The translations under genes and the position numbers were made by a program. The notes under the pieces are model-generated. The model did no database searches. It saw only the letters and a list, made by a program, of their open reading frames with translations, and was not told the DNA's origin. Of a DNA stretch of 64,000 nucleotides, positions 41,641-64,000 are shown piece by piece; positions within the stretch are counted from its first letter, which is position 1, and each line of letters begins with the position of its first letter. The DNA is from Phaeosaccion multiseriatum (taxonomy: Eukaryota > Protista > Ochrophyta, other classes). The stretch is from NCBI GenBank assembly GCA_965112735.1, contig OZ218962.1, forward strand, positions 3,100,001 to 3,164,000. The letters run 5' to 3'.

Positions 41641-41768
41641 CGACAATTGTCGGTTGAAAGCTAATGCGCATTAGTGCAGCGGTGGACGTAAAGTACGGGA
41701 TGAGTACGGGAAGTTGAAACGGTCGGAGTAGACTTTAGCACTGGTGCGTCTGCCACGCTGCATTGAGT

Positions 41769-43380: not shown

Positions 43381-44469
43381 GTGGTGTATGTGGAGCACGG
43401 CAAGGTCATGCGCTTGAAGGATGGCACTCTACGACCAGGTCATGTGCTTGAAGAAGGCGCTCTATGCATGGCGTTTGCATCAGGCATCCTCATTGTATTT
43501 GTTGATGATTTGTCCTGCGGAGGAAAGCAGGAGGTGGTGGACTGGCTCTTTACAGAGCTGGACAACAAGTTTTCGTTGAAGAGACTTGGGCCCAATGTTG
43601 ATCAGTTTTTGGGAGTGCGCGTTGTGTTCAACCGGAGCGTAGGCACTGTCACATTGACATTGGAGCACTACATCAAGAAGATGATAGTGAAGTTTGGTTT
43701 GGAGTCTGATCGAGTTTACTCGACACCCGGTGTGTCTGGCACAGCACTCAGCAAGAGTATGGAGCCATCGTCTGCAGCTGATGTAGCTTTTATGACTGAC
43801 AAGGACTACCCCGGTGTGGTGGGCGTTTTGATGTGGATCTCAAACTGGACAAGGCCTGATATTGCCTATGCTGTTCGAGAGTTGTCGCGGTATATGAAGA
43901 ACCCCGGCCCTGAGCATTGGAAGCAGGCTATGCGTGTGTTTGGATACCTGAAGGGTACTGTGGATCGTGCTTTGGTGTTTGGCAAGGGCGAGTGTGTTTT
44001 GGAAGCATATGCAGACGCGAATTACGCTGCATGTGTTGACACTCGCAGGAGTTCGACTGGTTACGCTTTGATGTACGGAGGTGCAGCTATCACTTGGGGT
44101 GTGCGATTGCAGCTGAGTGTGGCGATGTCTTCGCTGGAGAGCGAGTACATGGCGGCCAGTGACTGTGTGAAGGAAATATTATACATTAGGCAGGTATTGA
44201 GTTTCTTGTTCCCTGATGACTCGTCGAAGGCGACAGTTGTTTTTGAGGACAACATGGGGTGTATCAAGCTGGCAGAGAGCAATGCATCGACGCGGAGGAT
44301 GAAGCACATTGATGTTCGGTTTCATTTTCTGCAAGACGCAGTGAAGGAGGCTCTTATTGCATTTGAGTACGTGGCTTCAAAGGCGCAGCTGGCTGACCTT
44401 TTGACGAAGCACGTAACCCCGGCAGTACTTGTAGCTTTACGTGAAAAGATGATGGGTTTTAGGGCGTAG
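43381..44469 (+). CDS. Copia reverse transcriptase C-terminal part and RNase H
   Basis: IVFVDD, TRPDIAYAV, YADANYA...RRSSTGY, SSLESEY, FEDNMGCI, KHIDVRFHF and QLADLLTK. No ATG start, and the N-terminal RT motifs are absent. Confidence 0.9.
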   Translation: MVYVEHGKVMRLKDGTLRPGHVLEEGALCMAFASGILIVFVDDLSCGGKQEVVDWLFTELDNKFSLKRLGPNVDQFLGVRVVFNRSVGTVTLTLEHYIKKMIVKFGLESDRVYSTPGVSGTALSKSMEPSSAADVAFMTDKDYPGVVGVLMWISNWTRPDIAYAVRELSRYMKNPGPEHWKQAMRVFGYLKGTVDRALVFGKGECVLEAYADANYAACVDTRRSSTGYALMYGGAAITWGVRLQLSVAMSSLESEYMAASDCVKEILYIRQVLSFLFPDDSSKATVVFEDNMGCIKLAESNASTRRMKHIDVRFHFLQDAVKEALIAFEYVASKAQLADLLTKHVTPAVLVALREKMMGFRA

Positions 44470-45044: not shown

Positions 45045-46766
45045 TCACAGCTCAAGACCCGACCTTGGGCCCTCCACACGCACGCACGCTCGCAGCGCCT
45101 TCCGCCCAAGCCTTTTCCTCTCACTCGCCGTCACCATGCTCTCCTCCAGCACCGCCCACTCCTCCTCCTGCTGCTCATCGTCAGCATCATCACCCCCTCC
45201 TCCTGAGCGATAGCGGTGGTAGGCAGACACAAAGCCTCCAACAATGCTCTCCACGCTGGCCCCCTTCCTCTTGGTGCGGACCGCACAGTAGGGAAGTAGC
45301 CTCACCCTCCTCCGGCCCACAGTCACCACCACGCCATTCGACAGCTCTGTGTCTCGACGACCCAAGCAGACTGTGGCAGCCTCAGCCCCACCACCCTCCA
45401 GCTCCCTCCACAGACCAGCGGGCAGCTGAACCTCGTCCCCGACATGGAGCCCCAGCCTCGCAATCAATCCTGTCCCACTCTCCTCCTCCCTGTCGTTCTC
45501 TTCATTGTCTTCTTCCTTGGTTGGAAGTCTTGCCCTTTTCCCTTCTCTCCCACGGATGTCGGTCGCAGCTCGTCGCTTGGATCCAGGCGCACACTGAAGC
45601 CCCCCCTCCTGCTGCTCTGCTCTCTCGCGTTTCATTCGAGCATGCCCTTTGCACATCCCACCTAAACCATGCTGAGGGTGTTTGTTGCAGCCCCCTTCAC
45701 TACACCTCTTCCTCACAGCTCCATGAGACGTACACAACCCTCCTTGGATACGCCTCTTTTGACACCCCTCGACAGAACACCTCTTGGTCACGGCTCCATG
45801 AGACGCACACAATCCTCCCTGGATACGCCTCTTTTGACACCCCTCGACAGAACACCTCTTGGTCACAGCTCCATGAGACGTACACAATCCTCCCTGGATA
45901 CGCTTCTTTCCACACCCCTCGACAGAGCACCTAATGGTCACAGCTCCATGAGACGCACACAGTCCTCCCTGCTGCGACTGCTTTTGACACCCCTCGACAG
46001 AACACCTCTTCCTCACAGCTCCATGAGACGTACACAACCCTCCCTGCATCGACTGCTTTTGACACCCGTCGACAGAACACCTCTTGAGTTGAGCCCCATG
46101 CAAAATACATAATCCTCCCTGCTTCGACTGCTTTTGACATCCCTCGACAGAACACCTCTTGGTCACGGCTCCATGAGACGTACACAATCCTCCCTGGACA
46201 CGCCTCTTTTGACACCCCTCGACAGAGCACCTCATGGTCACAGCTCCATGAGACGCACACAATCCTCCCTGCTTCGACTGCTTTTGACACCCCTCGACAG
46301 AACACCTCTTGACTACAGCTCCATGGGACACACACAACCCTCCCTGAACCGACTGCTTTTGACACCCCTCGACAGAACACCTCTTCACTTGAGCTCCATG
46401 GGACACACACAACCCTCCCTGAACCGACCGCTTTTGACACCCCTCGACAGAACACCTCTTGGTCACAGCTCCATGAGACGTACATAATCCTCCTTGGATA
46501 CGCCTCTTTTGACACCCCTCGACAGAACACCTCTTGGTCACGGCTCCATGAGACGCACATAATCCTCCCTGCTTCGACTGCTTTTGACACCCCTCGACAG
46601 AACACCTCTTCACTGGAGCTCCATGGGACACACACAGTCCTCCCTGCCTCGACTGCTTTTGACACCCCTCGACAGAACACCTCTTCCTCACAGCTGCATG
46701 AGACGTACATAATCCTCCCTGCTGCGACTGCTTTTGACACCCCTCAACTTTACACACTCCTGGCAT
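45045..46766 (-). CDS. C3H (WRKY19-like) zinc-finger array protein, copy 1: 14 fingers plus capping finger
   Basis: 25-aa repeats C-x4-C-x9-C-x2-H (CSVEGCQKxxxQGGLCxSHGAxxKR). First ATG (MPGVCK) at 46766; the ORF-track start is a GTG. Confidence 0.85.
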   Translation of the reverse strand: MPGVCKVEGCQKQSQQGGLCTSHAAVRKRCSVEGCQKQSRQGGLCVSHGAPVKRCSVEGCQKQSKQGGLCASHGAVTKRCSVEGCQKRRIQGGLCTSHGAVTKRCSVEGCQKRSVQGGLCVSHGAQVKRCSVEGCQKQSVQGGLCVSHGAVVKRCSVEGCQKQSKQGGLCASHGAVTMRCSVEGCQKRRVQGGLCTSHGAVTKRCSVEGCQKQSKQGGLCILHGAQLKRCSVDGCQKQSMQGGLCTSHGAVRKRCSVEGCQKQSQQGGLCASHGAVTIRCSVEGCGKKRIQGGLCTSHGAVTKRCSVEGCQKRRIQGGLCASHGAVTKRCSVEGCQKRRIQGGLCTSHGAVRKRCSEGGCNKHPQHGLGGMCKGHARMKRERAEQQEGGLQCAPGSKRRAATDIRGREGKRARLPTKEEDNEENDREEESGTGLIARLGLHVGDEVQLPAGLWRELEGGGAEAATVCLGRRDTELSNGVVVTVGRRRVRLLPYCAVRTKRKGASVESIVGGFVSAYHRYRSGGGGDDADDEQQEEEWAVLEESMVTASERKRLGRKALRACVRVEGPRSGLEL

Positions 46767-47682
46767 AGCTTCCCTCCAAGGCTCCAGTGGTGTCTTTGAA
46801 ATACTCGAACGCCTTGCTGTTGCTGCTCCTCCTGCCACTGCTTTTGTCACTGCTGCTACTTCCGTTGGGAGTCAAGCTCGGTAAGGTAACACTCTCTCGT
46901 TTCTCCTCTTGACTTGAGCTAACGGGAAGCCTCTCTTTGTAGACAGTGGCGACGTCTGCCCTTTGAACGCCTTGCTGCTGCTGCTGCTGCTGCCTGCTGC
47001 TGAGACTGCTGTCTGGGGTCTCTCGTTCTTGAGCTAAAGGGAAGCCCCTAGAGAAGTGGCTTAAAGAGGGCAAAATGATGACGTTGCTGCTGCCGCTGCG
47101 GATGGTGCCGTTGCTGCTGCTGCCGATGGGTCGATGTGTTCTACTCCTTGCTTCGGGGGGGTGGGGGGAAGGGGGGGTGAAGTTGCTGCTCCCGCTGCTG
47201 ATGGTACCGCTGCTGCTATTGCCGATGGGTCGATGTGTTCTACCCCTTGCTTCGGGGGGGGGGGGGGGGAAGTTGCTGTTCCCGCTGCTGATGGTACCGC
47301 TGCTGCTACTTCCGATGGGTCGATGTGTTCTACTCCTTGCTTCGGGGGGGGGGGGGGGGGGGATGAAGTTGCTGCTGCCGCTGCTGATGGTACCGCTGCT
47401 GCTACTGCAGATGGTCGATGTGTCTGTTTTTTTCCGGGGGGAGGTCCTTCTCCGTACAGAAAGTCAATGAATTAGAGGCATACGGACGACCGACCCTTCT
47501 TTGTTCTTTGTACTACGACGTACTTCGATTTTATACTCTCTCAGAGCCCCTCCTCCATGTTACCCCCCTCTGTCCCTTCCCACCCCCTGTCCACTCTCCA
47601 TACACTGCATCAGTGCATCTACTTCAAGCAGACACTGTCTTAGATACTGAATGACAGAGCACCACTTCTCGTCATCGGGTCT

Positions 47683-49029
47683 TCACAGCTCAAGCCCCGA
47701 CCTTGGGCCCTCCACACGCACGCACGCTCGCAGCGCCTTCCGCCCGCGCTTCTTTCTCTCACTCGCCGTCACCATGCTCTCCTCCAGCACCGCCCACTCC
47801 TCCTCTCGCTGCTCATCGGCAGCATCATCACCCCCTCCACCTGAGTGATACCGGTGGTAGGCAGACACAAAGTCTCCAACAATGCTCTCCACGCTGGCCC
47901 CCTTCCTCTTGGTGCGAACCGCACAGTAGGGCAGTAGCCTCACCCTCCTCCGGCCCACAGTCACCACCACGCCATTCGACAGCTCTGTGTCTCGATGACC
48001 CAAGCAGACTGTGGCAGCCTCAGCCCCATCACCCTCCAGCTCCCTCCACAGACCAGCGGGCAGCTGAACCTCGTCCCCGACATGGAGCCCCAGCCTCGCA
48101 ATCAATCCTGTCCCACTCTCCTCCTCCCTGTCGTTCTCTTCATTGTCTTCTTCCTTGGTTGGAAGTCTTGCCCTTTTCCCTTCTCTCCCACGGATGTCGG
48201 TCGCAGCTCGTCGCTTGGATCCAGGCGCACACTGAAGCCCCCCCTCCTGCTGCTCTGCTCTCTCTCGTTTCATTCGAGCATGCCCTTTGCACATCCCACC
48301 TAAGCCACCCTGAGGGTACTTGTTGCAGCCCCCTTCGCTACACCTCTTCCTCACAGCTCCATGAGACGTACACAACCCTCCCTGCTTCGACTGCTTTTGA
48401 CACCCGTCGACAGAACACCTCATGGTCACGGCTCCATGAGACGTACACAATCCTCCCTGCTTCGACTGCTTTTGACACCCCTCGACAGAACACCTCTTCC
48501 TCACAGCTCCATGAGACGTACATAATCCTCCCTGGACACGCCTCTTTTGACACCCCTCGACAGAACACCTCTTCCTCACAGCTCCATGAGACGTACATAA
48601 TCCTCCCTGGATACGATTCTTTCCACACCCCTCGACAGAGCACCTCTTGGTCACAGCTCCATGAGACACACACAATCCTCCCTGCTTCGACTGCTTTTGA
48701 CACCCCTCGACAGAACACCTCTTGGTCACGGCTCCATGAGACGCACACAATCCTCCCTGGACACGCCTCTTTTGACACCCCTCGACAGAACACCTCTTGG
48801 TCACGGCTCCATGAGACGCACACAATCCTCCCTGCTTCGACTGCTTTTGACACCCCTCAACAGAGCACCTCTTGACTACAGCTCCATGGGACACACACAA
48901 CCCTCCCTGCTGCGAATACCTTTGACACCCCTCGACAGAACACTTCTTGGTCACGGCTCCATGAGACGTACACAATCCTCCCTGCTGCGAATACTTTTGA
49001 CACCCCTCAACTTTACACACTCCTGGCAT
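47683..49029 (-). CDS. C3H zinc-finger array protein, copy 2: 9 fingers plus cap
   Basis: Same architecture, intact ORF. Confidence 0.85.
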   Translation of the reverse strand: MPGVCKVEGCQKYSQQGGLCTSHGAVTKKCSVEGCQRYSQQGGLCVSHGAVVKRCSVEGCQKQSKQGGLCASHGAVTKRCSVEGCQKRRVQGGLCASHGAVTKRCSVEGCQKQSKQGGLCVSHGAVTKRCSVEGCGKNRIQGGLCTSHGAVRKRCSVEGCQKRRVQGGLCTSHGAVRKRCSVEGCQKQSKQGGLCTSHGAVTMRCSVDGCQKQSKQGGLCTSHGAVRKRCSEGGCNKYPQGGLGGMCKGHARMKRERAEQQEGGLQCAPGSKRRAATDIRGREGKRARLPTKEEDNEENDREEESGTGLIARLGLHVGDEVQLPAGLWRELEGDGAEAATVCLGHRDTELSNGVVVTVGRRRVRLLPYCAVRTKRKGASVESIVGDFVSAYHRYHSGGGGDDAADEQREEEWAVLEESMVTASERKKRGRKALRACVRVEGPRSGLEL

Positions 49030-50154
49030 AGCTTCCCTCCAAGGCTCCAGTGGTGTCTTTGAAATACTCGAACGCCTTGCTGTTGCTGCTCCTCCTGCCA
49101 CTGCTTTTGCCACTGCTGCTACTTCCGTTGGGAGTCAAGCTCGGTAAGGTAACACTCTCTCGTTTCTCCTCTTGACTTGAGCTAACGGGAAGCCTCTCTT
49201 TGTAGACAGTGGCGACGTCTGCCCTTTGCACGCCTTGCTGCTGCTGCTGCTGCCTACTGCTGAAAATGCCGTCGGGTGTCTCTCCTTATTGGGCTAAAGG
49301 GAACCTAGAGAAGTGGCTTAAAGAGGGGAAAGAGTGAACTACGTTGATGAAGTTGCTGCTGCCGCTGCTGATGGCGCCCCGATGGGTGGATGTGTTCTAC
49401 TCCTTGCTTCGGGGGGGGGGGGGGAGGTGAAGTTGCTGCTCCCGCTGCTGATGGTACCGCTGCTGCTGCTGTCGATGGTTGATCTGTTCTACCCCTTTTG
49501 CAAGGGGGGGGGAGTCCGTACAGAAAGTCAATGAATTAATTAGAGGCATACAGGCGACTTTTATACTCAATCTCAATCTCGCTCCCGCCGGCCAGAGATA
49601 AGATCTTGATGTTAAAGTAAGCTTTAAGCTCTCAGTCACAGGGGAACACATCCAGGCTAAAGGCCTTGGTCGAGCCTCAATGGCTGCTGCTGCCTACCTT
49701 GAGGCGTAACCACCCTGTTGGCCTTCATCCCCGCTGTTGCCTCTACGGTGGTAAGGAAGGAGCAGGTTCCAGGACCGGTTCCACAGACATGGGAGGAGGC
49801 TCTGTGTGCTTTCTAACCTCATGATGAGGGACTCACACTAGACCTGCCTTCCTTCTTTGACGTATACTTCGATCACACTTGAGGTGTCAAACTCCTTCTG
49901 AAGTGTCAGTCTAGACCTGCCTTCCTTCTTTGACGTATACTTCGATCAATCGTCGGAGCGCAGGCTTTGGCCACCTCCGTGCCTTGATGGTTGCCGAGTA
50001 CTCATTCGCCCAAGCCAGCCCCTCCTCCATGTTACCCCCCTCTGTCCCTTCCCACCCCCTGTCCACTCTCCATACACTGCATCAGTGCATCTACTTCAAG
50101 CAGACACTGTCTTAGATACTGAATGACAGAGCACCACTTCTCGTCATCGGGTCT

Positions 50155-51276
50155 TCACAGCTCAAGCCCCGACCTTGGGCCCTCCACACGCACGCACGCT
50201 CGCAGCGCCTTCCGCCCAAGCCTTTTCCTCTCACTCGCCGTCACCATGCTCTCCTCCAGCACCGCCCACTCCTCCTCCTGCTGCTCATCGTCAGCATCAT
50301 CACCCCCTCCACCTGAGTGATACCGGTGGTAGGCAGACACAAAGTCTCCAACAATGCTCTCCACGCTGGCCCCCTTCCTCTTGGTGCGGACCGCACAGTA
50401 GGGCAGTAGCCTCACCCTCCTCCGGCCCACAGTCACCACCACGCCATTCGACAGCTCTGTGTCTCGATGGCCCAAGCACACCGCGGCAGCCTCAGCCCCA
50501 TCACCCTCCAGCTCCCTCCACAGACCAGCGGGCAGCTGAACCTCGTCCCCGACATGGAGCCCCAGCCTCGCAATCAATCCCGTCCCACTCTCCTCCTCCC
50601 TGTCGTTCTCTTCATTGTCTTCTTCCTTGGTTGCAAGTCTTGCCCTTTTCCCTTCTCTCCCACGGATGTCGGTTGCAGCTCGTCGCTTAGATCCAGGCGC
50701 ACACTGAAGCCCCCCCTCCTGCTGCTCTGCTCTCTCTCGTTTCATTCGTGCGTGTCTCATGCACATCCCACCTAAGCCATGCTGAGGGTACTTGTTGCAG
50801 CCCCCTTCGCTACACCTCTTCCTCACAGCTCCATGGGCTGTGCATAATCCTCCCTGCCTCGACCGCTTTTCACACCCTTCGACAGAGCACCTCTTCCTCA
50901 CAGCTCCATGAGACGCACACAATCCTCCCTGCCTCGACTGCTTTTGACACCCCTCGACAGAGCACCTCTTGGTCACAGCTCCATGAGACGCACACAATCC
51001 TCCCTGCTTCGACTGCTTTTGACACCCCTCGACAGAGCACCTCTTGGTCACGGCTCCATGAGACGCACATAATCCTCCCTGCCTCGACTGCTTTTGACAC
51101 CCCTCGACAGAACACCTCTTCACTGGAGCTCCATGGGACACACACAGTCCTCCCTGCCTCGACTGCTTTTGACACCCCTCGACAGAACACCTCTTCCTCA
51201 CAGCTCCATGAGACGTACATAATCCTCCCTGCTGCGACTGCTTTTGACACCCCTCAACTTTACACACTCTTGGCAT
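50155..51276 (-). CDS. C3H zinc-finger array protein, copy 3: 6 fingers plus cap
   Basis: Same architecture, intact ORF. Confidence 0.85.
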   Translation of the reverse strand: MPRVCKVEGCQKQSQQGGLCTSHGAVRKRCSVEGCQKQSRQGGLCVSHGAPVKRCSVEGCQKQSRQGGLCASHGAVTKRCSVEGCQKQSKQGGLCASHGAVTKRCSVEGCQKQSRQGGLCASHGAVRKRCSVEGCEKRSRQGGLCTAHGAVRKRCSEGGCNKYPQHGLGGMCMRHARMKRERAEQQEGGLQCAPGSKRRAATDIRGREGKRARLATKEEDNEENDREEESGTGLIARLGLHVGDEVQLPAGLWRELEGDGAEAAAVCLGHRDTELSNGVVVTVGRRRVRLLPYCAVRTKRKGASVESIVGDFVSAYHRYHSGGGGDDADDEQQEEEWAVLEESMVTASERKRLGRKALRACVRVEGPRSGLEL

Positions 51277-52416
51277 AGCTTCCCTCCAAGGCTCCAGTGG
51301 TGTCTTTGAAATACTCGAACGCCTTGCTGTTGCTGCTCCTCCTGCCACTGCTTTTGTCACTGCTGCTACTTCCGTTGGGAGTCAAGCTCGGTAAGGTAAC
51401 ACTCTCTCGTTTCTCCTCTTGGCTTGAGCTAACGGGAAGCCTCTCTTTGTAGACAGTGGCGACGTCTGCCCTTTGAACGCCTTGCTGCTGCTGCTGCTGC
51501 TGCTGCCTGCTGCTGAGAATGCCGTCTGGGGTCTCTCCTTATTGAGCTAAAGGGAAGCCCTTAGAGAAGTGGCTTAAAGAGGGGCAAGAGTGAACTACTT
51601 TGATGAAGTTGCTGCTGCCGATGGGTCGATGTGTTCTACTCCTTGCTTCGGGGGGGGGGGGGGGGGGAGTTGCTGTTCCCGCTGGTGATGGTACCGCTGG
51701 TGCTGCTGCTGCTGATGGGTTGATCTGTTCTACTCTTTTCCTTGCAGGGGGCGGAGGTCCGAGGTCCCCCTCTCCCTACAGAAAGTCAACGAATTAGAGG
51801 CATACGATCGGCGACCAGCTCTTCGATTTTAAACTCTCTCAATCTCGCTCCCGCCGGCCAGAGATAAGATCTTGAGTTAGGAGTCAGGCTCCTCTCAGTC
51901 ACAGGGGAACACATCCAGGCTAAAGGCCTTGGTCGAGCCTCAATGGCTGCTGCTGCCTACCTTGACGCGTAACCACCCTGTTGGCCTTCATCCCCGCTGT
52001 TGCCTCTATGGTGGTAAGGAAGGAGCAGGTTCCAGGACCGGTTCCACAGACATGGGAGGAGGCTCTGTGTGCTTTCTAACCTCATGATGAGGGACTCACA
52101 CTAGACCTGCCTTCCTTCTTTGACGTATACTTCCATCACACTTGAGGTGTCAAACTCCTTCTGAAGTGTCAGTCTAGACCTGCCTTCCTTCTTTGACGTA
52201 TATTTCGATCAATCGTCGGAGCGGAGGCTTTGGCCACCTCCGTGCCTTGATGGTTGCCGAGTGCTCATTCGCCCAAGCCAGCCCCTCCTCCATGTTACCC
52301 CCCTCTATCCCTTCCCACCCCCTGTCCACTCTCCATACACTGCATCAGTGCATCTGCTTCAAGCAGACAATCTCTTAGATACTGAATGACAGAGCACCAC
52401 TTCTCGTCATCGGTCT

Positions 52417-53763
52417 TCACAGCTCAAGCCCTGACCTTGGGCCCTCCACACGCACGCACGCTCGCAGCGCCTTCCGCCCGCGCTTCTTTCTCTCACTCGC
52501 CGTCACCATGCTCTCCTCCAGCACCGCCCACTCCTCCTCCTGCTGCTCATCGTCAGCATCATCACCCCCTCCACCTGAGTGATACCGGTCGTAGGCAGAC
52601 ACAAAGTCTCCAACAATGCTCTCCACGCTGGCCCCCTTCCTCTTGGTGCGGACCGCACAGTAGGGCAGTAGCCTCACCCTCCTCCGGCCCACAGTCACCA
52701 CCACGCCATTCGACAGCTCTGTGTCTCGATGACCCAGGCAGACCGTGGCAGCCTCAGCCCCATCACCCTCCAGCTCCCTCCACAGACCAGCGGGCAGCTG
52801 AACCTCGTCCCCGACATGGAGCCCCAGCCTCGCAATCAATCCTTCCCCACTCTCCTCCTCCCTGTCGTTCTCTTCATTGTCTTCTTCCTTGGTTGGAAGT
52901 CTTGCCCTCTTCCCTTCTCTCCCACGGATGTCGGTCGCAGCTCGTCGCTTGGATCCAGGCGCACACTGAAGCCCCCCCTCCTGCTGCTCTGCTCTCTCTC
53001 GTTTCATTCGTCCGTGTCTGATGCACATCCCACCTAAGCCATGTTGAGGGTGTTTGTTGCAGCCCCCTTCGCTACACCTCTTCCTCACAGCTCCATGGGC
53101 TGTGCATAATCCTCCCTGCCTCGACTGCTTTTGACACCCCTCGACAGAACACCTCTTGAGTTGAGCCCCATGAGACGCACACAATCCTCCCTGCCTCGAC
53201 TGCTTTTGACACCCCTCGACAGAGCACCTCTTGGTCACAGCTCCATGGGACACACACAATCCTCCCTGCTGCGACTGCTTTTGACACCCCTCGACAGAAC
53301 ACTTCTTGGTCACAGCTCCATGAGACGCACACAATCCTCCCTGCTGCGACTGCTTTTGACACCCCTCGACAGAACACTTCTTGGTCACAGCTCCATGAGA
53401 CGCACACAATCCTCCCTGCCTCGACAGCTTTTGACACCCCTCGACAGAACACCTCTTGAGTTGAGCCCCATGAGACGCACACAATCCTCCCTGCCTCGAC
53501 TGCTTTTGACACCCCTCGACAGAACACCTCTTGGTCACGGCTCCATGAGACGCACATAATCCTCCCTGGACACGCTTCTTTTCACACCCCTCGACAGAAC
53601 ACCTCTTGACTACAGCTCCATGAGACGTACACAATCCTCCCTGCTGCGACTGCTTTTGACACCCCTCGACAGAACACCTCTTGGTCACAGCTCCATGGGA
53701 CACACACAACCCTCCCTGAACCGACTGCTTTTGACACCCCTCAACTTTACACACTCCTGGCAT
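52417..53763 (-). CDS. C3H zinc-finger array protein, copy 4: 9 fingers plus cap
   Basis: Same architecture, intact ORF. Confidence 0.85.
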   Translation of the reverse strand: MPGVCKVEGCQKQSVQGGLCVSHGAVTKRCSVEGCQKQSQQGGLCTSHGAVVKRCSVEGCEKKRVQGGLCASHGAVTKRCSVEGCQKQSRQGGLCASHGAQLKRCSVEGCQKLSRQGGLCASHGAVTKKCSVEGCQKQSQQGGLCASHGAVTKKCSVEGCQKQSQQGGLCVSHGAVTKRCSVEGCQKQSRQGGLCASHGAQLKRCSVEGCQKQSRQGGLCTAHGAVRKRCSEGGCNKHPQHGLGGMCIRHGRMKRERAEQQEGGLQCAPGSKRRAATDIRGREGKRARLPTKEEDNEENDREEESGEGLIARLGLHVGDEVQLPAGLWRELEGDGAEAATVCLGHRDTELSNGVVVTVGRRRVRLLPYCAVRTKRKGASVESIVGDFVSAYDRYHSGGGGDDADDEQQEEEWAVLEESMVTASERKKRGRKALRACVRVEGPRSGLEL

Positions 53764-56019
53764 AGCTTCCCTCCAAGGCTCCAATTTTACTTTTTTTATA
53801 CTAGAACGCCCTGCTGTTGCTGCCCCTCCTGCCACTGCTTTTGTCACTGCTGCTACTTCCGTTGGGAGTCAAGCTCGGTAAGGTATAAGGTAACACTCTC
53901 TCGTTTCTCCTCTTGACTTGAGCCAACGGGAAGCCTCTCTTTGTAGACAGTGGCGACGTCTGCCCTTTGCACGCCTTGCTGCTGCTGCTGCTGCTGCTGC
54001 CTGCTGCTGAAAATGCCGTCGGGTGTCTCTCCTTATTGGGCTATAGGGAAGCCCCTAGAGCAGTGGCTTAAAGAGGGGGAAAGAGTGAATTATAACTACG
54101 TTGATGACGTTGTGCTGCCGCTGCTGATGGTGCCGCTGCTGCTGCTGCCGATGGGTCAATGTGTTCTACTCCTTGCTTCGGGGGGGGGGGGTGAAGTTGA
54201 TGCTCCCGCTGCTGATGGTACCGCTGCTGCTACTGTCGATGGTTGATCTGTTCTACCCTTTTTGCAGGGGAGGTACCCCGTCTCCGTACAGAAAGTCAAT
54301 GAATTAATTAGAGGCATACAGGCGACTTTTATACTCTCTCAATCTCGCTCCCACCGGCCAGAGATAAGATCTTGATGTTAAAGTAAGCTTTAGCTCTCAG
54401 TCACAGGGGAACACATCCAGGCTAAAGGCCTTGGTCGAGCCTCAATGGCTGCTGCTGCCTACCTTGAGGCGTAACCACCCTGTTGGCCTTCATCCCCGCT
54501 GTTGCCTCTACGGTGGTAAGGAAGGAGCAGGTTCCAGGACCGGTTCCACAGACATGGGAGGAGGCTCTGTGTGCTTTCTAACCTCATGATGAGGGACTCA
54601 CACTAGACCTGCCTTCCTTCTTTGACGTATACTTCGATCAATCTTGAGGTGTCAAACTCCTTCTGAAGTGTCAGTCTAGACCTGCCTTCCTTCTTTGACG
54701 TATACTTCGATCAATCGTCGGAGCGCAGGCTTTGGCCACCTCCGTGCCTTGATGGTTGCCGAGTGCTCATTCGCCCAAGCCAGCCCCTCCTCCATGTTAC
54801 CCCCTTCTGTCCCTTCCCACCCCCTGTCCACTCTCCATACACTGCATCAGTGCATCTGCTTCCAGCAGACAATGTCTTAGATACTGATTGACAGAGCACC
54901 ACTTCTCGTCATCGGGTATTCACAGCTCAAGACCCGACCTTGGGCCCTCCACACGCACGCACGCTCGCAGCGCCTTCCGTCCGCGCTTCTTTCTCTCACT
55001 CGCCGTCACCATGCTCTCCTCCAGCACCGCCCACTCCTCCTCTCGCTTCTCGTCATCAGCATCATCACCCCCTCCACCTGAGTGATACCGGTCGTAGGCA
55101 GACACAAAGTCTCCAACAATGCTCTCCACGCTGGCCCCCTTCCTCTTGGTGCGGACCGCACAGTAGGGCAGTAGCCTCACCCTCCTCCGACCCACCGTCA
55201 CCACCACGCCATTCGACAGCTCTGTGTCTCGATGACCCAAGCAGACTGTGGCAGCCTCAGCCCCATCACCCTCCAGCTCCCTCCACAGACCAGCGGGCAG
55301 CTGAACCTCGTCCCCGACATGGAGCCCCAGCCTCGCAATCAATCCTGTCCCACTCTCCTCCTCCCTGTCGTTCTCTTCATTGTCTTCTTCCTTGGTTGGA
55401 AGTCTTGCCCTTTTCCCTTCTCTCCCACGGATGTCGGTCGCAGCTCGTCGCTTGGATCCAGGCGCACACTGAAGCCCCCCCTCCTGCTGCTCTGCTCTCT
55501 CTCGTTTCATTCGTGCGTGTCTGATGCACATCCCACCTAAGCCACCCTGAGGGTACTTGTTGCAGCCCCCTTCACTACACCTCTTCATCACAGCTCCATG
55601 GGACACACACAGTCCTCCCTGCTTCGACTGCTTTTGACACCCGTCGACAGAACACTTCTTGGTCACAGCTCCATGAGACGCACACAATCCTCCCTGCCTC
55701 GACTGCTTTTGACACCCCTCGACAGAGCACCTCATGGTCACAGCTCCATGAGACGCACATAATCCTCCCTGCTTCGACTGCTTTTGACACCCCTCGACAG
55801 AACACCTCTTCACTGGAGCTCCATGGGACACACACAGTCCTCCCTGCCTCGACTGCTTTTGACACCCCTCGACAGAACACCTCTTCCTCACAGCTCCATG
55901 ACACGTACACAACCCTCCCTGCATCGACTGCTTTTGACACCCGTCGACAGAACACCTCTTAAGTTGAGCCCCATGCAAAATACATAATCCTCCCTGCTTC
56001 GACTGCTTTTCACACCCCT

Positions 56020-59000
56020 GCCAGAAGGGTGTGGAGGGTGGCGTCGGTGGGGCCGTTCTTGTGGGCCCTCAGCGCCCTGTTCCAGTTGTTGAGCGCTCTT
56101 TGCTGTAAGCTACGTCAGCTCGATTATCAGCTTACAGCAAAGAGCGCTCAACAACTGGAACAGGGCGCTGAGGGCCCACAAGAACGGCCCCACCGACGCC
56201 ACCCTCCACACCCTTCTGGCATGGGATGTCTTCCACCACCTCCTCCCTGCCATGCTCTTCTCTAAAGACGGAGCCTACAGCCGCCAGCAGCGGATACAGA
56301 TGGTCCTCGACCTCGACATCGCCCCACTCGCACAAGCAGCGATAGCCACAGCACACGCACGCCGCCCACCACCCCCAGCACAGGCACAGACAGAGGAGCG
56401 ACGGAGAGAAACCTGCGCCCACCTGCTCACCAAACCCGGAGGCCTGCACAAGGCCGCGGCGAGGCTCAGCACAAAGAGCAGAGACGGCCACCTCCCCCCC
56501 ACACATGAAACCTTTAGACGCATCCAGCAAGCGCACGTCGACGAGAGCCTCGAGGAGATTAGCACAGCAGCAGCAGCAGCCAGGGAGTACGCCAGAACCC
56601 AGTTGCAGGAGCACCCCGAGAATGGCAACGACGTCACCAGAGAGGAGATCAGCACAGCCATGCTGCTGACCTACCGGAGGGTCAACTTCTGGAAGGGCCA
56701 AGGAGCAGACGGGCGCAGGGCGAGCCACGTCAAGTACCCCCCGGACAGCCCCCAGGAGTACGCAATCGTGGAGGCTCTGACTGACACCTACGAGCTGCTC
56801 CGAACGGGGGACACTCCACTGCCTCCACAGCTCGTCAAACGGTGGTTCAGCACCAGCGCCGCAGCCCTCGGCGAGAAAGCGCGTCCTGTAACATCCCCCA
56901 ACCTCTACCGCAGCCTCGTGGAGAGCTGTCACATGAAGCTCATCGCGGACAGGGTGGGCCCGGAGCTCAGAAGCGCAGGACAGCCAGCGGTAGCGGTCAG
57001 AGGCGGAGGGGAAACACACGCCGCAGCAGCCCAGCTAGCGCACGATGCCGGCAAAACCGTCGTGCTGCAGGACATCACCAAGGCCTACACCCGCGTGTCG
57101 CGTGCCAGAGGCGTCCTAGCCTCAGGCGCACTCCCTACCATCGACCCAGCAGGCATCAACTACGCCATCGCCAGCCTCTCCCACGCCTCCGCCCACAACG
57201 CCCTCACACCAGACGGCACCCAGACCATCCACCAGAGCTCCGGAGTCAACCAAGGAGCACCAGAAGGGCCTCTCATGTTCGCAGCCGCCATGCACCCAGT
57301 GCTGAAAGTTCAGCACACAGCCGACACCGCAGCGAACCGCCCCACCATCTCCGCCTACGCAGACGACCTCATGGACCAGCTAGAACCCGACGCACCCCTC
57401 GCGACCTACGCCCCACGACATGCCCATCTCCAAGCCCAATTCCGAGGCTTGGGCCTCGAGTTCAACGAGAGGAAGACGGTTTACCTCATGGGCAAAGGCA
57501 AGCAGCCAACACAGGCTGACAGGGACCACGCCCAACGGCAGGGCGCCACACTCGCCACCGAGGGTACCGTGGTAGCCGGCATCCCCGTCGGCACGGAGGA
57601 GTACATCGAAGAGTACCTCCGCAACATCCTCGGCCAAGAAGACCCCAGGGGCTACCTCCAACTCGCCAAACACTGCAGCGAGTGGGACAACACCCAGGCG
57701 GCCACCCTCGTCCTCCTCCAATGCCTCCCAGCCAGGCTCACACACCTGGCGAGAGCCATTGACCCCTCCATCTTCCAACGCGCCCTCGGCAGCAGGGCAG
57801 ACCGCACCAACAGAGCGACAATGGCCCACATCATGCGACTCCCCGATGCCCCCCCTCTGGAGCAGGCCGCAGATGCACAAGAGGAGCCATGGACGGAGAC
57901 GCAGCGCCTACAAATGCATACGGCACGGCGCTTCGGCGGCCTCGGCCTCACCAGCCTCCACGACATCGCCCCAGCAGCATACCTTGGCAACAAGATGCTC
58001 ACCCTCCCCCCCCTGCTCAGCCGCACCGCACGCCGGGAAGGCTCCCAAGAGAGCGCCCTACCGGACCAGCTGTTCACCAACGGAGCCCTCAAGAGCGTCG
58101 CCGACAGCGTCAACCTCCTGCACGAGGAGGGGGTCCCTGAGGCCCCCCTCATCCAAGCAGTGGGTCAGGCACAGTTCGACGAGGCCCGCTCACGCGTACT
58201 CGAGCCGCCTGACCACCAAGCCCAAGACACAGCGCGACGCAACGTGCGCAGGAGCCATCAGGCAGGCCGTCAACCGACCCACGGCGTCCAGAAGGCCCTC
58301 ACCACCTTCATCCACAAACGCCGCCATGAGGAGCTGACGCAGAGCATCGCCACCATCGACGTCACACCGGCAGAGGCACAGAGGGGAGAGGAGACACAGG
58401 AAATGGCAACAGCCCGACTCCACTCACAGCGAGGAAGGGGTGCCATGGCCTTCCTCGGAGCGCTCCCCCACGGCCACAACACCATGGCCCCCGCAGAATG
58501 GACCATGGCCCTTCGTCGCAACCTCGGTGTCAACACGCCATACGCGGACCCGCCCCCACCCTGCCTCGGCACAGGCTGCGCCCGCACGGCAAGCACCACC
58601 CACGCCACCATCTGCCCCCGCACAGGCCTCCACAACCACACACACCACCTCCTCGTCAAGGCCTTCGGGAGGATGATGCACAGCGTGGGCATTGGAGGAG
58701 CACGCGTAGAGGACCAGACCTGCTTCGACGGCCCCACGGGCACCCGAGCAGGCCGAGACCTACGCATGGACCTGACCTATCCCGCAGGTAGCTTCCCGGG
58801 AGCGGACGCACCCCTGCGGAGAAACCTCCTCTGCGACATCACCGTCACCAACCCCACCGCCCCCACCCACGTGGGACGGGCCTCCACCACGCCAGGCCAC
58901 GCAGCAGCCGTCGCCGAAGAACGCAAGCACACACACTACATGGGCAGTTTTCTGCCCGGGACTTCAACCCTGAAGTGCATTGCAATCGAGACGTACGGCA

Positions 59001-59574
59001 GACTGGGCCACCAAACGGACGAGCTCATCGAGGCGATGGCCATCCACAAGGCATCAAGAGGGCTCGGCCCCGCAGCGGCGGCAGCCACGGGCCCCATCAA
59101 GGGCCTCCTGCGCCAACAGCTGTCCCTCGCCCTTCAACGCGCCCTCTCACAGCGGGAGATCAGGTATGGCACCCTCCTTCGAGCCACGATGACGCAGCAC
59201 GAAGCAGCAGAAACCCTCGACTGGGGGCTCATGGGAGCCATCGACGGAGCGGCCGCCTGAGGAGCAGGAGTACACCAGACAGCAGACAGCGAGACCATCA
59301 GCACACAGCATCGCAACCACAGTTAGTCACGACTTGTCTCCCGCACCACCCACAGTAGGATAGTTCACATATCGCCTCACTCCTTCCCACACCCCTTCAT
59401 CTCCCCCTCCCCCCTTCACTCCCTTCCCACTCCCCATTATCCCCTACTCTACCACCCTTCCCATCCTCTTTCCCTCCACATCACGCTCCATCAATACCAC
59501 ACATACACGCATCTACACATGGTTACAACTTACCTCGAGCGCTCCAATACTGAGCCCATAAGCTCTAATATACA
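56020..59574 (+). mobile_element. 5'-truncated CRE-like (RT plus restriction-like endonuclease) non-LTR retrotransposon
   Basis: TSD TTTCACACCCCT at 56008-56019 and 59575-59586. Single RT-RLE ORF, pyrimidine-rich 3' UTR and a 5' inverted duplication. Confidence 0.9.
56252..59260 (+). CDS. Reverse transcriptase with CCHC-type finger and PD-(D/E)xK restriction-like endonuclease
   Basis: RT motifs ARPV, QDITKAYTRVSR, GVNQGAPEGPLMF, AYADDL, GLEFNERKT, GIPVG and RFGGLGL. C-terminal CLGTGC...HATIC, RMDL, CDITV, AEERKHTHY and IETYGRLG. The frame stays open upstream to ~56111, so the ORF is N-terminally truncated. Confidence 0.9.
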   Translation: MLFSKDGAYSRQQRIQMVLDLDIAPLAQAAIATAHARRPPPPAQAQTEERRRETCAHLLTKPGGLHKAAARLSTKSRDGHLPPTHETFRRIQQAHVDESLEEISTAAAAAREYARTQLQEHPENGNDVTREEISTAMLLTYRRVNFWKGQGADGRRASHVKYPPDSPQEYAIVEALTDTYELLRTGDTPLPPQLVKRWFSTSAAALGEKARPVTSPNLYRSLVESCHMKLIADRVGPELRSAGQPAVAVRGGGETHAAAAQLAHDAGKTVVLQDITKAYTRVSRARGVLASGALPTIDPAGINYAIASLSHASAHNALTPDGTQTIHQSSGVNQGAPEGPLMFAAAMHPVLKVQHTADTAANRPTISAYADDLMDQLEPDAPLATYAPRHAHLQAQFRGLGLEFNERKTVYLMGKGKQPTQADRDHAQRQGATLATEGTVVAGIPVGTEEYIEEYLRNILGQEDPRGYLQLAKHCSEWDNTQAATLVLLQCLPARLTHLARAIDPSIFQRALGSRADRTNRATMAHIMRLPDAPPLEQAADAQEEPWTETQRLQMHTARRFGGLGLTSLHDIAPAAYLGNKMLTLPPLLSRTARREGSQESALPDQLFTNGALKSVADSVNLLHEEGVPEAPLIQAVGQAQFDEARSRVLEPPDHQAQDTARRNVRRSHQAGRQPTHGVQKALTTFIHKRRHEELTQSIATIDVTPAEAQRGEETQEMATARLHSQRGRGAMAFLGALPHGHNTMAPAEWTMALRRNLGVNTPYADPPPPCLGTGCARTASTTHATICPRTGLHNHTHHLLVKAFGRMMHSVGIGGARVEDQTCFDGPTGTRAGRDLRMDLTYPAGSFPGADAPLRRNLLCDITVTNPTAPTHVGRASTTPGHAAAVAEERKHTHYMGSFLPGTSTLKCIAIETYGRLGHQTDELIEAMAIHKASRGLGPAAAAATGPIKGLLRQQLSLALQRALSQREIRYGTLLRATMTQHEAAETLDWGLMGAIDGAAA

Positions 59575-60949
59575 TTTCACACCCCTCGACAGAACACCTG
59601 TTGGTCACGGCTCCATGAGACGTACACAATCCTCCCTGGACACGCCTCTTTTGACACCCCTCGACAGAGCACCTCTTCCTCACAGCTCCATGAGACGTAC
59701 ATAATCCTCCCTGCTGCGACTGCTTTTGACACCCCTCAACTTTACACACTCCTGGCATAGCTTCCCCCCAAGGCTCCAGTGGTGTCTTTGAAATACTCGA
59801 ACGCCTTGCTGCTGCTGCCCCTCCTGCCACTGCTTTTGTCACTGCTGCTACTTCCGTTGGGAGTCAAGCTCGGTAAGGTAACACTCTCTCGTTTCTCCTC
59901 TTGACTTGAGCTAACGGGAAGCCTCTCTTTGTAGACAGTGGCGACGTCTGCCCTTTGCACGCCTTGCTGCTGCTGCTGCTGCCTGCTGCTGAAAATGCCG
60001 TCGGGTGTCTCTCCTTATTGGGCTAAAGGGAAGCCCCTAGAGAAGTGGCTTAAAGAGGGGAAAGAGTGAACTACGTTGATGAAGTTGCTGCTGCCGCTGC
60101 TGATGGCGCCCCGATGGGTGGATGTGTTCTACTCCTTGCTTCGGGGGGGGGGGGGGGGGGGTGAAGTTTATGCTCCCGCTGCTGATGGTACCGCTGCTGC
60201 TACTGTCGATGGTTGATCTGTTCTACCCCTTTTGCAGGGGGGGGGGGGAGGTACCCCGTCTCCGTACAGAAAGTCAATGAATTAATTAGAGGCATACAGG
60301 CGACTTTTATACTCTCTCAATCTCGCTCCCACCGGCCAGAGATAAGATCTTGATGTTAAAGTAAGCTTTAGCTCTCAGTCACAGGGGAACACATCCAGGC
60401 TAAAGGCCTTGGTCGAGCCTCAATGGCTGCTGCTGCCTACCTTGAGGCGTAACCACCCTGTTGGCCTTCATCCCCGCTGTTGCCTCTACGGTGGTAAGGA
60501 AGGAGCAGGTTCCAGGACCGGTTCCACAGACATGGGAGGAGGCTCTGTGTGCTTTCTAACCTCATGATGAGGGACTCACACTAGACCTGCCTTCCTTCTT
60601 TGACGTATACTTCCATCACACTTGAGGTGTCAAACTCCTTCTGAAGTGTCTTTGACGTATACTTCGATCAATCTTGAGGTGTCAAACTCCTTCTGAAGTG
60701 TCAGTCTAGACCTGCCTTCCTTCTTTGACGTATACTTCGATCAATCGTCGGAGCGCAGGCTTTGGCCACCTCCGTGCCTTGATGGTTGCCGAGTGCTCAT
60801 TCGCCCAAGCCAGCCCCTCCTCCATGTTACCCCCTTCTGTCCCTTCCCACCCCCTGTCCACTCTCCATACACTGCATCAGTGCATCTGCTTCCAGCAGAC
60901 AATGTCTTAGATACTGAATGACAGAGCACCACTTCTCGTCATCGGGTAT

Positions 60950-62221
60950 TCACAGCTCAAGACCCGACCTTGGGCCCTCCACACGCACGCACGCTCGCAG
61001 CGCCTTCCGTCCGCGCTTCTTTCTCTCACTCGCCGTCACCATGCTCTCCTCCAGCACCGCCCACTCCTCCTCTCGCTTCTCGTCATCAGTATCATCACCC
61101 CCTCCACCTGAGTGATACCGGTCGTAGGCAGACACAAAGTCTCCAACAATGCTCTCCACGCTGGCCCCCTTCCTCTTGGTGCGGACCGCACAGTAGGGCA
61201 GTAGCCTCACCCTCCTCCGACCCACAGTCACCACCACGCCATTCGACAGCTCTGTGTCTCGATGACCCAAGCAGACTGTGGCAGCCTCAGCCCCATCACC
61301 CTCCAGCTCCCTCCACAGACCAACGGGCAGCTGAACCTCGTCCCCGCCATGGAGCCCCAGCCTCGCAATCAATCCTTCCGCACTCTCCTCCTTCCTGTCG
61401 TTCTCTTCATTGTCTTCTTCCTTGGTTGGAAGTCTTGCCCTCTTCCCTTCTCTCCCACGGATGTCGGTCGCAGCTCGTCGCTTGGATCCAGGCGCACACT
61501 GAAGCCCCCCCTCCTGCTGCTCTGCTCTCTCTCGTTTCATTCGAGCATGCCCTCTGCACATCCCACCTAAGCCACCCTGAGGGTACTTGTTGCAGCCCCC
61601 TTCGCTACACCTCTTCCTCACAGCTCCATGAGACGTACACAACCCTCCCTGCTTCGACTGCTTTTGACACCCCTCGACAGAACACCTCTTCCTCACAGCT
61701 CCATGAGACACACACAGTCCTCCCTGCTTCGACTGCTTTTGACACCCCTCGACAGAACACCTCTTCATCACAGCTCCATGCGACGCACATAATCCTCCCT
61801 GATGCGACTGCTTTTGACACCCCTCGACAGAACACCTCTTGGTCACAGCTCCATGGGACACACACAGTCCTCCCTGCCTCGACTGCTTTTGACACCCCTC
61901 GACAGAACACCTCTTCACTTGAGCTCCATGGGACACACACAACCCTCCCTGAACCGAGTGCTTTTGACACCCCTCGACAGAACACATCTTGGTCACGGCT
62001 CCATGAGACGCACATAATCCTCCCTGGACACGCTTCTTTTCACACCCCTCAACAGAACACCTCTTGACTACAGCTCCATGAGACGTACACAATCCTCCCT
62101 GCTGCGACTGCTTTTCACACCCCTCGACAGAACACCTCTTCACTTGAGCTCCATGGGACACACACAATCCTCCCTGCTGCGAATACTTTTGACACCCCTC
62201 AACTTTACACACTCCTGGCAT
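60950..62221 (-). CDS. C3H zinc-finger array protein, copy 6: 8 fingers plus cap
   Basis: Same architecture, intact ORF. Confidence 0.85.
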   Translation of the reverse strand: MPGVCKVEGCQKYSQQGGLCVSHGAQVKRCSVEGCEKQSQQGGLCTSHGAVVKRCSVEGCEKKRVQGGLCASHGAVTKMCSVEGCQKHSVQGGLCVSHGAQVKRCSVEGCQKQSRQGGLCVSHGAVTKRCSVEGCQKQSHQGGLCASHGAVMKRCSVEGCQKQSKQGGLCVSHGAVRKRCSVEGCQKQSKQGGLCTSHGAVRKRCSEGGCNKYPQGGLGGMCRGHARMKRERAEQQEGGLQCAPGSKRRAATDIRGREGKRARLPTKEEDNEENDRKEESAEGLIARLGLHGGDEVQLPVGLWRELEGDGAEAATVCLGHRDTELSNGVVVTVGRRRVRLLPYCAVRTKRKGASVESIVGDFVSAYDRYHSGGGGDDTDDEKREEEWAVLEESMVTASERKKRGRKALRACVRVEGPRSGLEL

Positions 62222-63168
62222 AGCTTCCCTCCAAGGCTCCAATTTTACTTTTTTTATACTAGAACGCCCTGCTGTTGCTGCCCCTCCTGCCACTGCTTTT
62301 GTCACTGCTGCTACTTCCGTTGGGAGTCAAGCTCGGTAAGGTATAAGGTAACACTCTCTCGTTTCTCCTCTTGACTTGAGCCAACGGGAAGCCTCTCTTT
62401 GTAGACAGTGGCGACGTCTGCCCTTTGAACGCCTTGCTGCTGCTGCTGCTGCTGCTGCCTGCTGCTGAGACTGCTGTCTGATGTCCCTCGTTCTTGAGCT
62501 AAAGGGAAGCCCCTAGAGAAGTGGCTTAAAGAGGGCAAAATGATGACGTTGCTGCTGCCGTTGCGGATGGTGCCGTTGCTGCTGCTGCCGATGGGTCGAT
62601 GTGTTCTACTCCTTGCTTCGGGGGGGTGGGGGGAAGGGGGGGTGAAGTTGCTGCTCCCGCTGCTGATGGTACCGCTGCTGCTATTGCCGATGGGTCGATG
62701 TGTTCTACTCCTTGCTTCGGGGGGGTGGGGGGAAGGGGGGGTGAAGTTGCTGTTCCCGCTGCTGATGGTACCGCTGCTGCTACTTCCGATGGGTCGATGT
62801 GTTCTACTCTTCTACTCTTCTACTCCTTGCTTCGGGGGGGGGGGGGGGGATGAAGTTGCTGCTGCCGCTGCTGATGGTACCTGCTGCTACTGCAGATGGT
62901 CGATGTGTCTGTTTTTTTCCGGGGGGAGGTCCTTCTCCGTACAGAAAGTCAATGAATTAGAGGCATACGGACGACCGACCCTTCTTTGTTCTTTGTACTA
63001 CGACGTACTTCGATTTTATACTCTCTCAGAGCCCCTCCTCCATGTTACCCCCCTCTGTCCCTTCCCACCCCCTGTCCACTCTCCATACACTGCATCAGTG
63101 CATCTGCTTCAAGCAGACAATCTCTTAGATACTGATTGACAGAGCACCACTTCTCGTCATCAGGGTAT

Positions 63169-64000
63169 TCACAGCTCAAGCCCCGACCTTGGGCCCTCCA
63201 CACGCACGCACGCTCGCAGCGCCTTCCGCCCGCGCTTCTTTCTCTCACTCGCCGTCACCATGCTCTCCTCCAGCACCGCCCACTCCTCCTCTCGCTGCTC
63301 ATCGGCAGCATCATCACCCCCTCCACCTGAGTGATACCGGTGGTAGGCAGACACAAAGTCTCCAACAATGCTCTCCACGCTGGCCCCCTTCCTCTTGGTG
63401 CGAACCGCACAGTAGGGCAGTAGCCTCACCCTCCTCCGGCCCACAGTCACCACCACGCCATTCGACAGCTCTGTGTCTCGATGACCCAAGCAGACTGTGG
63501 CAGCCTCAGCCCCATCACCCTCCAGCTCCCTCCACAGACCAGCGGGCAGCTGAACCTCGTCCCCGACATGGAGCCCCAGCCTCGCAATCAATCCTGTCCC
63601 ACTCTCCTCCTCCCTGTCGTTCTCTTCATTGTCTTCTTCCTTGGTTGGAAGTCTTGCCCTTTTCCCTTCTCTCCCACGGATGTCGGTCGCAGCTCGTCGC
63701 TTGGATCCAGGCGCACACTGAAGCCCCCCCTCCTGCTGCTCTGCTCTCTCTCGTTTCATTCGAGCATGCCCTTTGCACATCCCACCTAAGCCACCCTGAG
63801 GGTACTTGTTGCAGCCCCCTTCGCTACACCTCTTCCTCACAGCTCCATGAGACGTACACAACCCTCCCTGCTTCGACTGCTTTTGACACCCGTCGACAGA
63901 ACACCTCTTGGTCACGGCTCCATGAGACGTACACAATCCTCCCTGCTTCGACTGCTTTTGACACCCCTCGACAGAACACCTCTTGGTCACAGCTCCATGA
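63169..64000 (-). CDS. C3H zinc-finger array protein, copy 7 (partial; 5' end beyond the window)
   Basis: C-terminal domain, cap and at least 2 fingers; essentially identical to copy 2 over this span. Confidence 0.85.
   Translation of the reverse strand, partial: HGAVTKRCSVEGCQKQSKQGGLCTSHGAVTKRCSVDGCQKQSKQGGLCTSHGAVRKRCSEGGCNKYPQGGLGGMCKGHARMKRERAEQQEGGLQCAPGSKRRAATDIRGREGKRARLPTKEEDNEENDREEESGTGLIARLGLHVGDEVQLPAGLWRELEGDGAEAATVCLGHRDTELSNGVVVTVGRRRVRLLPYCAVRTKRKGASVESIVGDFVSAYHRYHSGGGGDDAADEQREEEWAVLEESMVTASERKKRGRKALRACVRVEGPRSGLEL

Follow-up and report, generated by a model that had tools for sequence, protein, structure and literature searches.

A tandem cluster of hypervariable Zf_WRKY19-class finger arrays in Phaeosaccion multiseriatum

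In KRAB-C2H2 clusters and PRDM9, tandem gene clusters and a minisatellite-like turnover of whole fingers are combined with a conserved finger scaffold, in which replacements fall on a few contact positions. Arrays of another finger, Zf_WRKY19, are found in oomycetes, plants, and diatoms, with 3,482 proteins matching one conserved array. A zinc-finger-type repeat has also been described from brown algae as EsV-1-7 (including IMMEDIATE UPRIGHT), a putative novel zinc finger with lineage-specific amplification and tandem arrays (bioRxiv 10.1101/2024.02.19.579948). Here we analyze a 64-kb window from Phaeosaccion multiseriatum (assembly GCA_965112735.1, contig OZ218962.1, positions 3,100,001-3,164,000; the window is the whole stretch of DNA analyzed, and all coordinates below refer to it), which carries seven paralogous genes for arrays of Zf_WRKY19 fingers. 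An earlier note on this DNA had read the cluster as a modular nucleic-acid recognition system under rapid diversification. What is new is that a Zf_WRKY19 cluster is hypervariable, differs in array length, and carries an orphan C-terminal module; we found no earlier description of such a cluster in the literature. We give an even chance to the explanation as a whole, in which the cluster is a lineage-specific tandem set of functional genes encoding basic, probably nuclear, multi-finger Zf_WRKY19-class proteins whose variable positions would contact a polymeric ligand, most likely nucleic acid.

Gene cluster and finger units

Seven paralogues (the earlier note had counted at least seven) lie head to tail on the minus strand from position 45045 to the end of the window with a spacing of 2.2-2.6 kb, as seen from the list of open reading frames (ORFs) and from Tandem Repeats Finder, and each contains one long ORF with an array of 75-bp period. 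The common architecture is 6-14 units of 75 bp or 25 amino acids (aa), a divergent cap finger, a basic stretch resembling a nuclear localization signal (NLS), an acidic linker, and the orphan C-terminal domain. Six ORFs, representing 1.1-1.7 kb of highly repetitive DNA each, are intact. G1 (45045..46766, ATG at 46766) has 14 canonical fingers followed by the cap and the C-terminal module, and G2 (47683..49029), G3 (50155..51276, the subject of our structure models), G4 (52417..53763), and G6 (60950..62221) are likewise intact with 9, 6, 9, and 8 canonical fingers and a cap. G5, with 8 fingers, is split by a retroelement within finger 3: its 5' part (59575..59758, minus strand) holds the start ATG, fingers 1 and 2, and finger 3 up to its seventh codon, while its 3' part (54920..56018, minus strand) holds the remainder of finger 3, five more fingers, the cap, and the C-terminal module. 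G7 (63169..64000), of which the C-terminal module, the cap, and the last two fingers are seen, runs past the window end.

The array proteins match the Pfam family Zf_WRKY19 (PF24906) with E values from 1e-50 to 1e-95 (169-311 bits, gathering cutoff 27) in 6-14 stretches per protein, which places the WRKY19-like assignment made from the motif far above threshold. A weaker match to CxC6 (PF18721, associated with KDZ transposases; 41-77 bits, cutoff 27.5) overlaps the stronger Zf_WRKY19 match. No match to zf-C2H2, SET, or KRAB was obtained in Pfam, and EsV_1_7_cys (PF19114) was insignificant (E 2.1, 8.7 bits, cutoff 25).

Parsing of the ORFs gave 55 canonical 25-aa units, 51 distinct as DNA and 47 as protein, and 7 cap fingers of the form CSEGGCNK[YH]PQ[GH]GLGGMCxxH, one at each array end. 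All 55 canonical units follow the pattern C-[SK]-V-[ED]-G-C-[QEG]-K-xxx-Q-G-G-L-C-x-S-H-G-A-xx-K-R, that is the C-x4-C-x9-C-x2-H spacing previously noted for the 25-aa module. The 16 triplet states proposed for positions 9-11 were all recovered, as were the secondary variable sites at position 17 (T/A/V/I) and at positions 22-23 (VT/VR/VV/PV/QV/QL/VM). The triplet strings of G1-G6 were reproduced exactly as well, with the correction that the string of G5 is not contiguous in the DNA. An R at position 10 is found only together with R, K, or N at position 9 and I or V at position 11, so that the triplets form two classes and not a free combination of residues, the second class being x-S-[K/R/Q/V/M/H]. 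K, R, and Q predominate at position 11. At position 7, CAA (Gln) is found in 49 of the 55 fingers, with GAA (Glu) among the few others. The arrays differ between paralogues by whole units, and the units are visibly mosaic.

The C-terminal module of 194 aa (represented by 50155..50739 on the minus strand in G3) contains the NLS-like basic stretch KRRAATDIRGREGKRAR, the acidic linker, and a region without assigned fold. When 1.84 billion representative proteins were searched exhaustively with phmmer, the C-terminal domain had no match; it has no Pfam family, and AlphaFold modelled it with a predicted local distance difference test score (pLDDT) below 35. Between paralogues the last 660 nt, which take in the cap and the C-terminal module, show 0-38 nt differences, with proportions of synonymous (pS) and replacement (pN) differences of 0.081 and 0.022. 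The resulting ratio of 0.27 shows that this part of the genes is under purifying selection. G2 and G7 are identical here (0/660 differences), and tandem repeats with G-runs and a period of 90-99 bp occur upstream of G1 and G6 only (47079-47423 and 62544-62908), which together points to a recent higher-order duplication of a block consisting of G2 or G7 with its spacer.

Variable positions in the cluster and in the wider family

Among the 55 units the amino-acid entropy has five peaks, at position 11 (2.49 bits), 23 (1.88), 17 (1.66), 9 (1.59), and 22 (0.79), while positions 2-4 and 7 are nearly fixed. The nearest relatives of the cluster proteins (48% identity) belong to a protein conserved in oomycetes and their allies, in which exactly seven fingers are spaced 24 aa apart. 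For 72 distinct conserved 7-finger arrays, whose units are in the same register as those of the cluster, we calculated the entropy between the fingers of a protein and across orthologues at the same finger. Position 9 showed 2.25 bits between fingers versus 0.02 across orthologues, position 10 showed 1.79 versus 0.21, position 11 showed 0.92 versus 0.00, and position 17 showed 1.92 versus 0.04, whereas positions 2-4 and 7 drift freely across orthologues (1.75-2.25 bits). The same trend was found at positions 9 and 11 and at the residue after Cys3 in a plant-type subfamily (38 arrays, 25-aa spacing). Since positions 9-11 and 17 vary between fingers and are nearly invariant across orthologues, we regard them as finger-identity residues that selection holds in place where function is conserved. 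The identity residues frozen in the conserved subfamilies are the very ones set free in the present cluster. This pattern is independent of any estimate of dN/dS and constitutes the strongest support for the idea of modular recognition. We consider it fairly probable that positions 9, 11, and 17, which are presumably exposed, make up a ligand-contact surface.

Within the cluster, pairwise counts between units gave a scaffold pN/pS of 0.14, and a triplet pN of 0.42 compared with a scaffold pS of 0.225. The latter value bears on the earlier impression of a homogenized scaffold with few changes even at synonymous sites. The homogeneity at the protein level stands, with a ratio of replacement to synonymous change (omega) for the scaffold of 0.14-0.17, but the scarcity of synonymous changes was overstated: the scaffold pS of 0.225 between units is well above the C-terminal value for paralogues, 0.08. 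There is no unusual synonymous constraint, and the units predate the duplication of the genes.

Changes were counted by parsimony, using a maximum-likelihood tree built from the 51 units that are distinct as DNA. Replacement and synonymous changes numbered 20 and 1 at codon 11, 14.5 and 1.5 at codon 17, 16.5 and 5.5 at codon 23, and 12.5 and 0.5 at codon 9, as opposed to 23 and 44 in the whole scaffold of 19 codons. Relative to the synonymous rate of the scaffold, the replacement rate was 2.3-fold at codon 11 (p 0.003), 2.0-fold at codon 17 (p 0.03), 1.6-fold at codons 22-23 (p 0.05), and 1.56-fold for all variable codons (p 0.011); the ratios at variable codons span 1.4- to 2.3-fold, and the binomial p values range from 0.003 (codon 11) to 0.09 (codons 9-11). 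A purpose-written site-wise codon-likelihood test with separate synonymous (alpha) and replacement (beta) rates gave a global omega of 0.50 and a scaffold omega of 0.17 (p 4e-12). Codons 9-11 pooled had a beta of 1.75 with alpha close to 0 (p 0.013), and codon 11 alone gave p 0.058; codon 7 showed replacement-only change (beta 1.34, alpha 0, p 0.02). Comparison of positionally homologous fingers between paralogues sidesteps the shuffling of units. In the first finger the variable-site pN was 0.365 versus a scaffold pS of 0.155, and in the cap finger all replacements fell on 5 positions, including position 9 and two residues after Cys3.

We read these results to mean that replacements at the variable positions occur at least at the neutral rate, and that codons 11 and 17 are probably under positive selection, with formal tests that are borderline. 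The expected signature of a homogenized scaffold with variable residues is thus present, the scaffold omega of 0.14-0.17 contrasting with replacement at codons 9, 11, 17, 22, and 23 at or above the synonymous rate. The predicted peak of entropy and dN/dS at codons 9-11 was found in part: entropy is high at 9 and 11 and replacements are in excess there, but positions 17, 22, and 23 take part as well, and an omega above 1 is borderline.

A relaxed, near-neutral drift at tolerant surface positions of a duplicating and recombining family, with the strings as by-products of shuffling and without target meaning, would account for some of these numbers. When the five variable codons are pooled and given their own synonymous rates, omega is 1.34 and not distinct from 1 (p 0.42), and in the last canonical finger the variable-site pN of 0.226 does not exceed the scaffold pS of 0.249. 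Drift would also fit the 16 triplets in two classes and the mosaic of units between paralogues. It is harder to reconcile with the 2.3-fold rate at codon 11, and with the near-fixation in the cluster of positions 2-4 and 7, the ones that drift freely among the conserved arrays. Moreover, the near-invariance of the identity positions across orthologues in the conserved subfamilies argues that they are not generally tolerant. We therefore regard drift as an improbable explanation, though one to be taken seriously, and prefer the reading of the variable positions as specificity determinants.

Structure, candidate ligand, and proposed mechanism

A full-length model of G3 from the paralogue alignment was unusable (pLDDT 46.6) and was replaced by a fingers-only AlphaFold2 model from a 73-sequence alignment built on the 72 conserved arrays, with a mean pLDDT of 77.8. 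DSSP, applied both to the fingers model and to the weaker full-length one, places beta-bridges or a short strand around unit positions 9-11 and 14-16, and short helical turns just after Cys3 in some fingers. From the model, each finger may be a small unit with a putative metal site, where Cys1 and Cys6 lie in a knuckle, positions 9-11 and 14-16 make up a beta-hairpin, and a short helix begins at Cys16 and His19. Structural searches gave a single significant match, the N-terminal array of Arabidopsis WRKY19 (Q9SZ67 residues 89-262; E 1.9e-11, TMq 0.61), where both structures are predictions, and Foldseek gave no significant match in the PDB.

The single-finger superpositions raise another explanation, in which the arrays would act as scaffolds that bind ubiquitin-like or other repeated protein surfaces, and the variable positions would tune protein-protein specificity. 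The best solved matches are A20-type fingers with ubiquitin (3vux, 3oj3, 2fif; root-mean-square deviation 0.8-1.5 A over 27-31 residues), and TNFAIP3 is in the AFDB match list. The A20 matches are insignificant, with E values above 3, and the ligands differ, A20-type fingers having C-x2-4-C-x11-C-x2-C, hence C4 with x11, compared with C3H and x9 here. The strongly basic arrays (isoelectric point, pI, 9.75 for the G3 array; 5.55 for its C-terminal half) and the link of the motif to nucleases and transposases also speak against a protein scaffold, which we hold to be rather unlikely.

For nucleic acid as the ligand the evidence is circumstantial, and we place the chances of this ligand class at about one half. 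In addition to the basic arrays, the K/R/Q preference at position 11, and the CxC6 match, it includes matches to phage proteins. The protein gp37 of Gordonia phage BrutonGaster (L001:678-1442) has three C-x4-C-x9-C-x2-H motifs N-terminal to an HNH nuclease and was matched by tblastn with 31% identity over 127 aa (E 8e-5), with a Zf_WRKY19 score of 20.5 bits that is under the cutoff of 27. PHROG families of HNH endonucleases match the array with E 1.3e-9. The similarity in sequence suggests that the Zf_WRKY19 finger of eukaryotes may be related to a targeting module of a phage nuclease. In our opinion DNA, rather than RNA, is the most likely nucleic acid; the basic arrays and the phage HNH motif favour DNA. 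The C-terminal region of P0002 was considered as a nuclease fusion and dropped, having no support from Pfam, PDB, or PHROG, and a preprint about the horizontal transfer of cysteine-rich repeats was set aside because it deals with a different, secreted repeat of other spacing.

Taken together we propose the following mechanism. Unequal crossover or gene conversion between paralogues would add, remove, and shuffle whole 75-bp units of the arrays, while the first finger and the cap remain fixed. Replacements are focused on positions 9 and 11 (with 10 coupled), 17, and 22-23, and these would be specificity-determining contacts, giving each paralogue a distinct contact string on a polymeric ligand to which the fingers presumably contribute additively. 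The constant C-terminal domain could then act as a shared effector or anchor. In its most specific form, the Zf_WRKY19 finger would be a modular nucleic-acid reader whose residues 9, 11, and 17 specify a short element and whose strings can be decoded and engineered, and the cluster would be a diversifying repertoire of such readers, possibly tracking fast-evolving targets, for example retroelements inserting into finger-coding DNA. In this form the proposal is speculative and we think it improbable.

Several observations weigh against the proposed explanation. The triplet alphabet is small and in two classes, and the pooled test over the five codons given above is not significant; an omega above 1 is unproven, since recombination of units and multi-nucleotide changes inflate such estimates. 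No experimental structure was found by sequence, the superpositions on solved A20-type fingers are weak, and the literature searched gave no ligand or function for the Zf_WRKY19 finger class. With respect to expression, genes and spacers are covered alike in three read runs of a single sample, and a fourth run, from another study, covers the coding sequence and approximately 280 nt of leader with almost no reads in the spacers (library kinds are unrecorded for all four); contigs from the reads are broken up by the repeats and too fragmented, and the reads give only a hint of transcription of the cluster.

The cluster can be regarded as a natural mutagenesis series, in which 55 fingers share one scaffold and differ almost only at five positions. 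Three of these (9, 11, and 17) are flagged by the family-wide conservation as specificity determinants, which makes the question of the ligand directly testable. Should the ligand prove to be DNA or RNA, the cluster could reveal a new unit of modular recognition.

Leader, neighbouring DNA, and comparison with known systems

The ATG four codons ahead of finger 1 (MPGVCKVEGC) is the probable start codon, judging from the sequence. The ORF finder gave an 84-nt in-frame extension upstream, which begins with GTG and lacks an ATG. Approximately 260 nt upstream of the genes are almost identical in six copies (46767-47030, 49030-49290, 51277-51540, 53764-54030, 59759-60020, and 62222-62490 on the minus strand, the third being the representative copy of G3), contain no ATG, and end in a (CAG)n run. 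A 7-bp duplication inside this region in G4 and G6, despite the near-identity of the copies, fits a leader better than coding sequence. The alternative, in which a poly-Q ORF upstream would be the first exon, was rejected, as this ORF has no ATG, carries the 7-bp indel in G4 and G6, and contains stops in G2; joining it in frame would call for an intron of 37 nt, implausibly short and unsupported by the data. The leader surpasses the C-terminal coding sequence (pS 0.08) in conservation, and it may be homogenized by conversion or constrained as regulatory sequence.

The retroelement in G5 (56019..59574, plus strand, 3,556 bp) has an RVT_1 ORF at 56252-59260, lies antisense within finger 3, and is flanked by an 11-bp target duplication GGGGTGTGAAA with copies at 56008-56018 and 59575-59585, which form the ends of the two parts of G5. 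As both halves of G5 are otherwise open, the insertion looks recent. A near-perfect fold-back with arms of approximately 93 nt and a short loop (56019-56221) forms the retroelement end abutting the 3' part of G5. The finger hit at GGGGTGTGAAA has Glu (GAA) at position 7, and this site, along with similar insertions reported at GGGTGTGAGAAG in WRKY19-like fingers elsewhere in the genome, suggests an element that targets finger-coding DNA.

Two plus-strand ORFs directly adjoin the 3' end of G1, the first (41763-43379) without a Pfam match and the second (43381-44469) with a fragment of a Copia-type reverse transcriptase (RVT_2). With reverse transcriptases at 43381-44469 and in G5, the region is rich in transposable elements, and together with the CxC6 score above its cutoff this could mean that the cluster belongs to a mobile element or was domesticated from one, the fingers being the element's own CxC6-like DNA recognition. 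The 2.4-kb unit has no transposase, integrase, or terminal repeats, no transposase family was matched among the Pfam-scanned ORFs, and CxC6 overlaps the much stronger Zf_WRKY19 match. Strict tandem copies, a common leader, and purifying selection likewise argue against such an origin, which we consider very improbable compared with a tandem set of functional genes. Further away in the window are an FNIP-repeat ORF (4650-5738, E 2e-28) and an ORF with an Ulp1-type C48 peptidase domain (15815-16870); the remainder of the first 40 kb holds long ORFs without Pfam families.

As to the known systems, the likeness to PRDM9 and TALE proteins drawn in the earlier note survives with regard to the pattern of scaffold and variable residues, but not for finger class, effector domains, or TALE-type repeats. 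Because the finger is not C2H2 and neither PR/SET, KRAB, nor TALE-like repeats are present, these proteins are analogies and not relatives. TALE repeats are helical, 33-35 aa long, and read one base each with a variable di-residue, whereas the units here are 25-aa Cys/His modules with beta-bridges and a short helix in the models. With KRAB-C2H2 clusters and PRDM9 the cluster shares tandem genes, gain and loss of whole fingers, a conserved scaffold, and focused replacement; it differs in having C3H fingers instead of the C2H2 beta-beta-alpha fold, in the absence of KRAB and PR/SET, and in its much weaker evidence for positive selection. EsV-1-7, among the nearest feature clusters, is likewise a stramenopile-associated zinc-finger-type repeat with tandem expansion, but of different spacing and unit length. 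The Cys modules of phage HNH proteins such as BrutonGaster gp37 have the same C-x4-C-x9-C-x2-H motif (CSVxxC...KGLCxxH), although they are prokaryotic-viral and comprise three fingers only, followed by a nuclease domain. The closest systems are the Zf_WRKY19 arrays of Arabidopsis WRKY19 and the 7-finger proteins of oomycetes and plants, which have the same finger, spacing, and 24-25-aa period, and a similar cap. Compared with these conserved proteins, the linker in the cluster is one residue longer (HGAxxKR) and the C-terminal domain is without a detectable homologue; and while the conserved proteins keep 7 fingers with frozen identities, the cluster has 6-14 fingers with hypervariable identity positions, encoded by genes in tandem.

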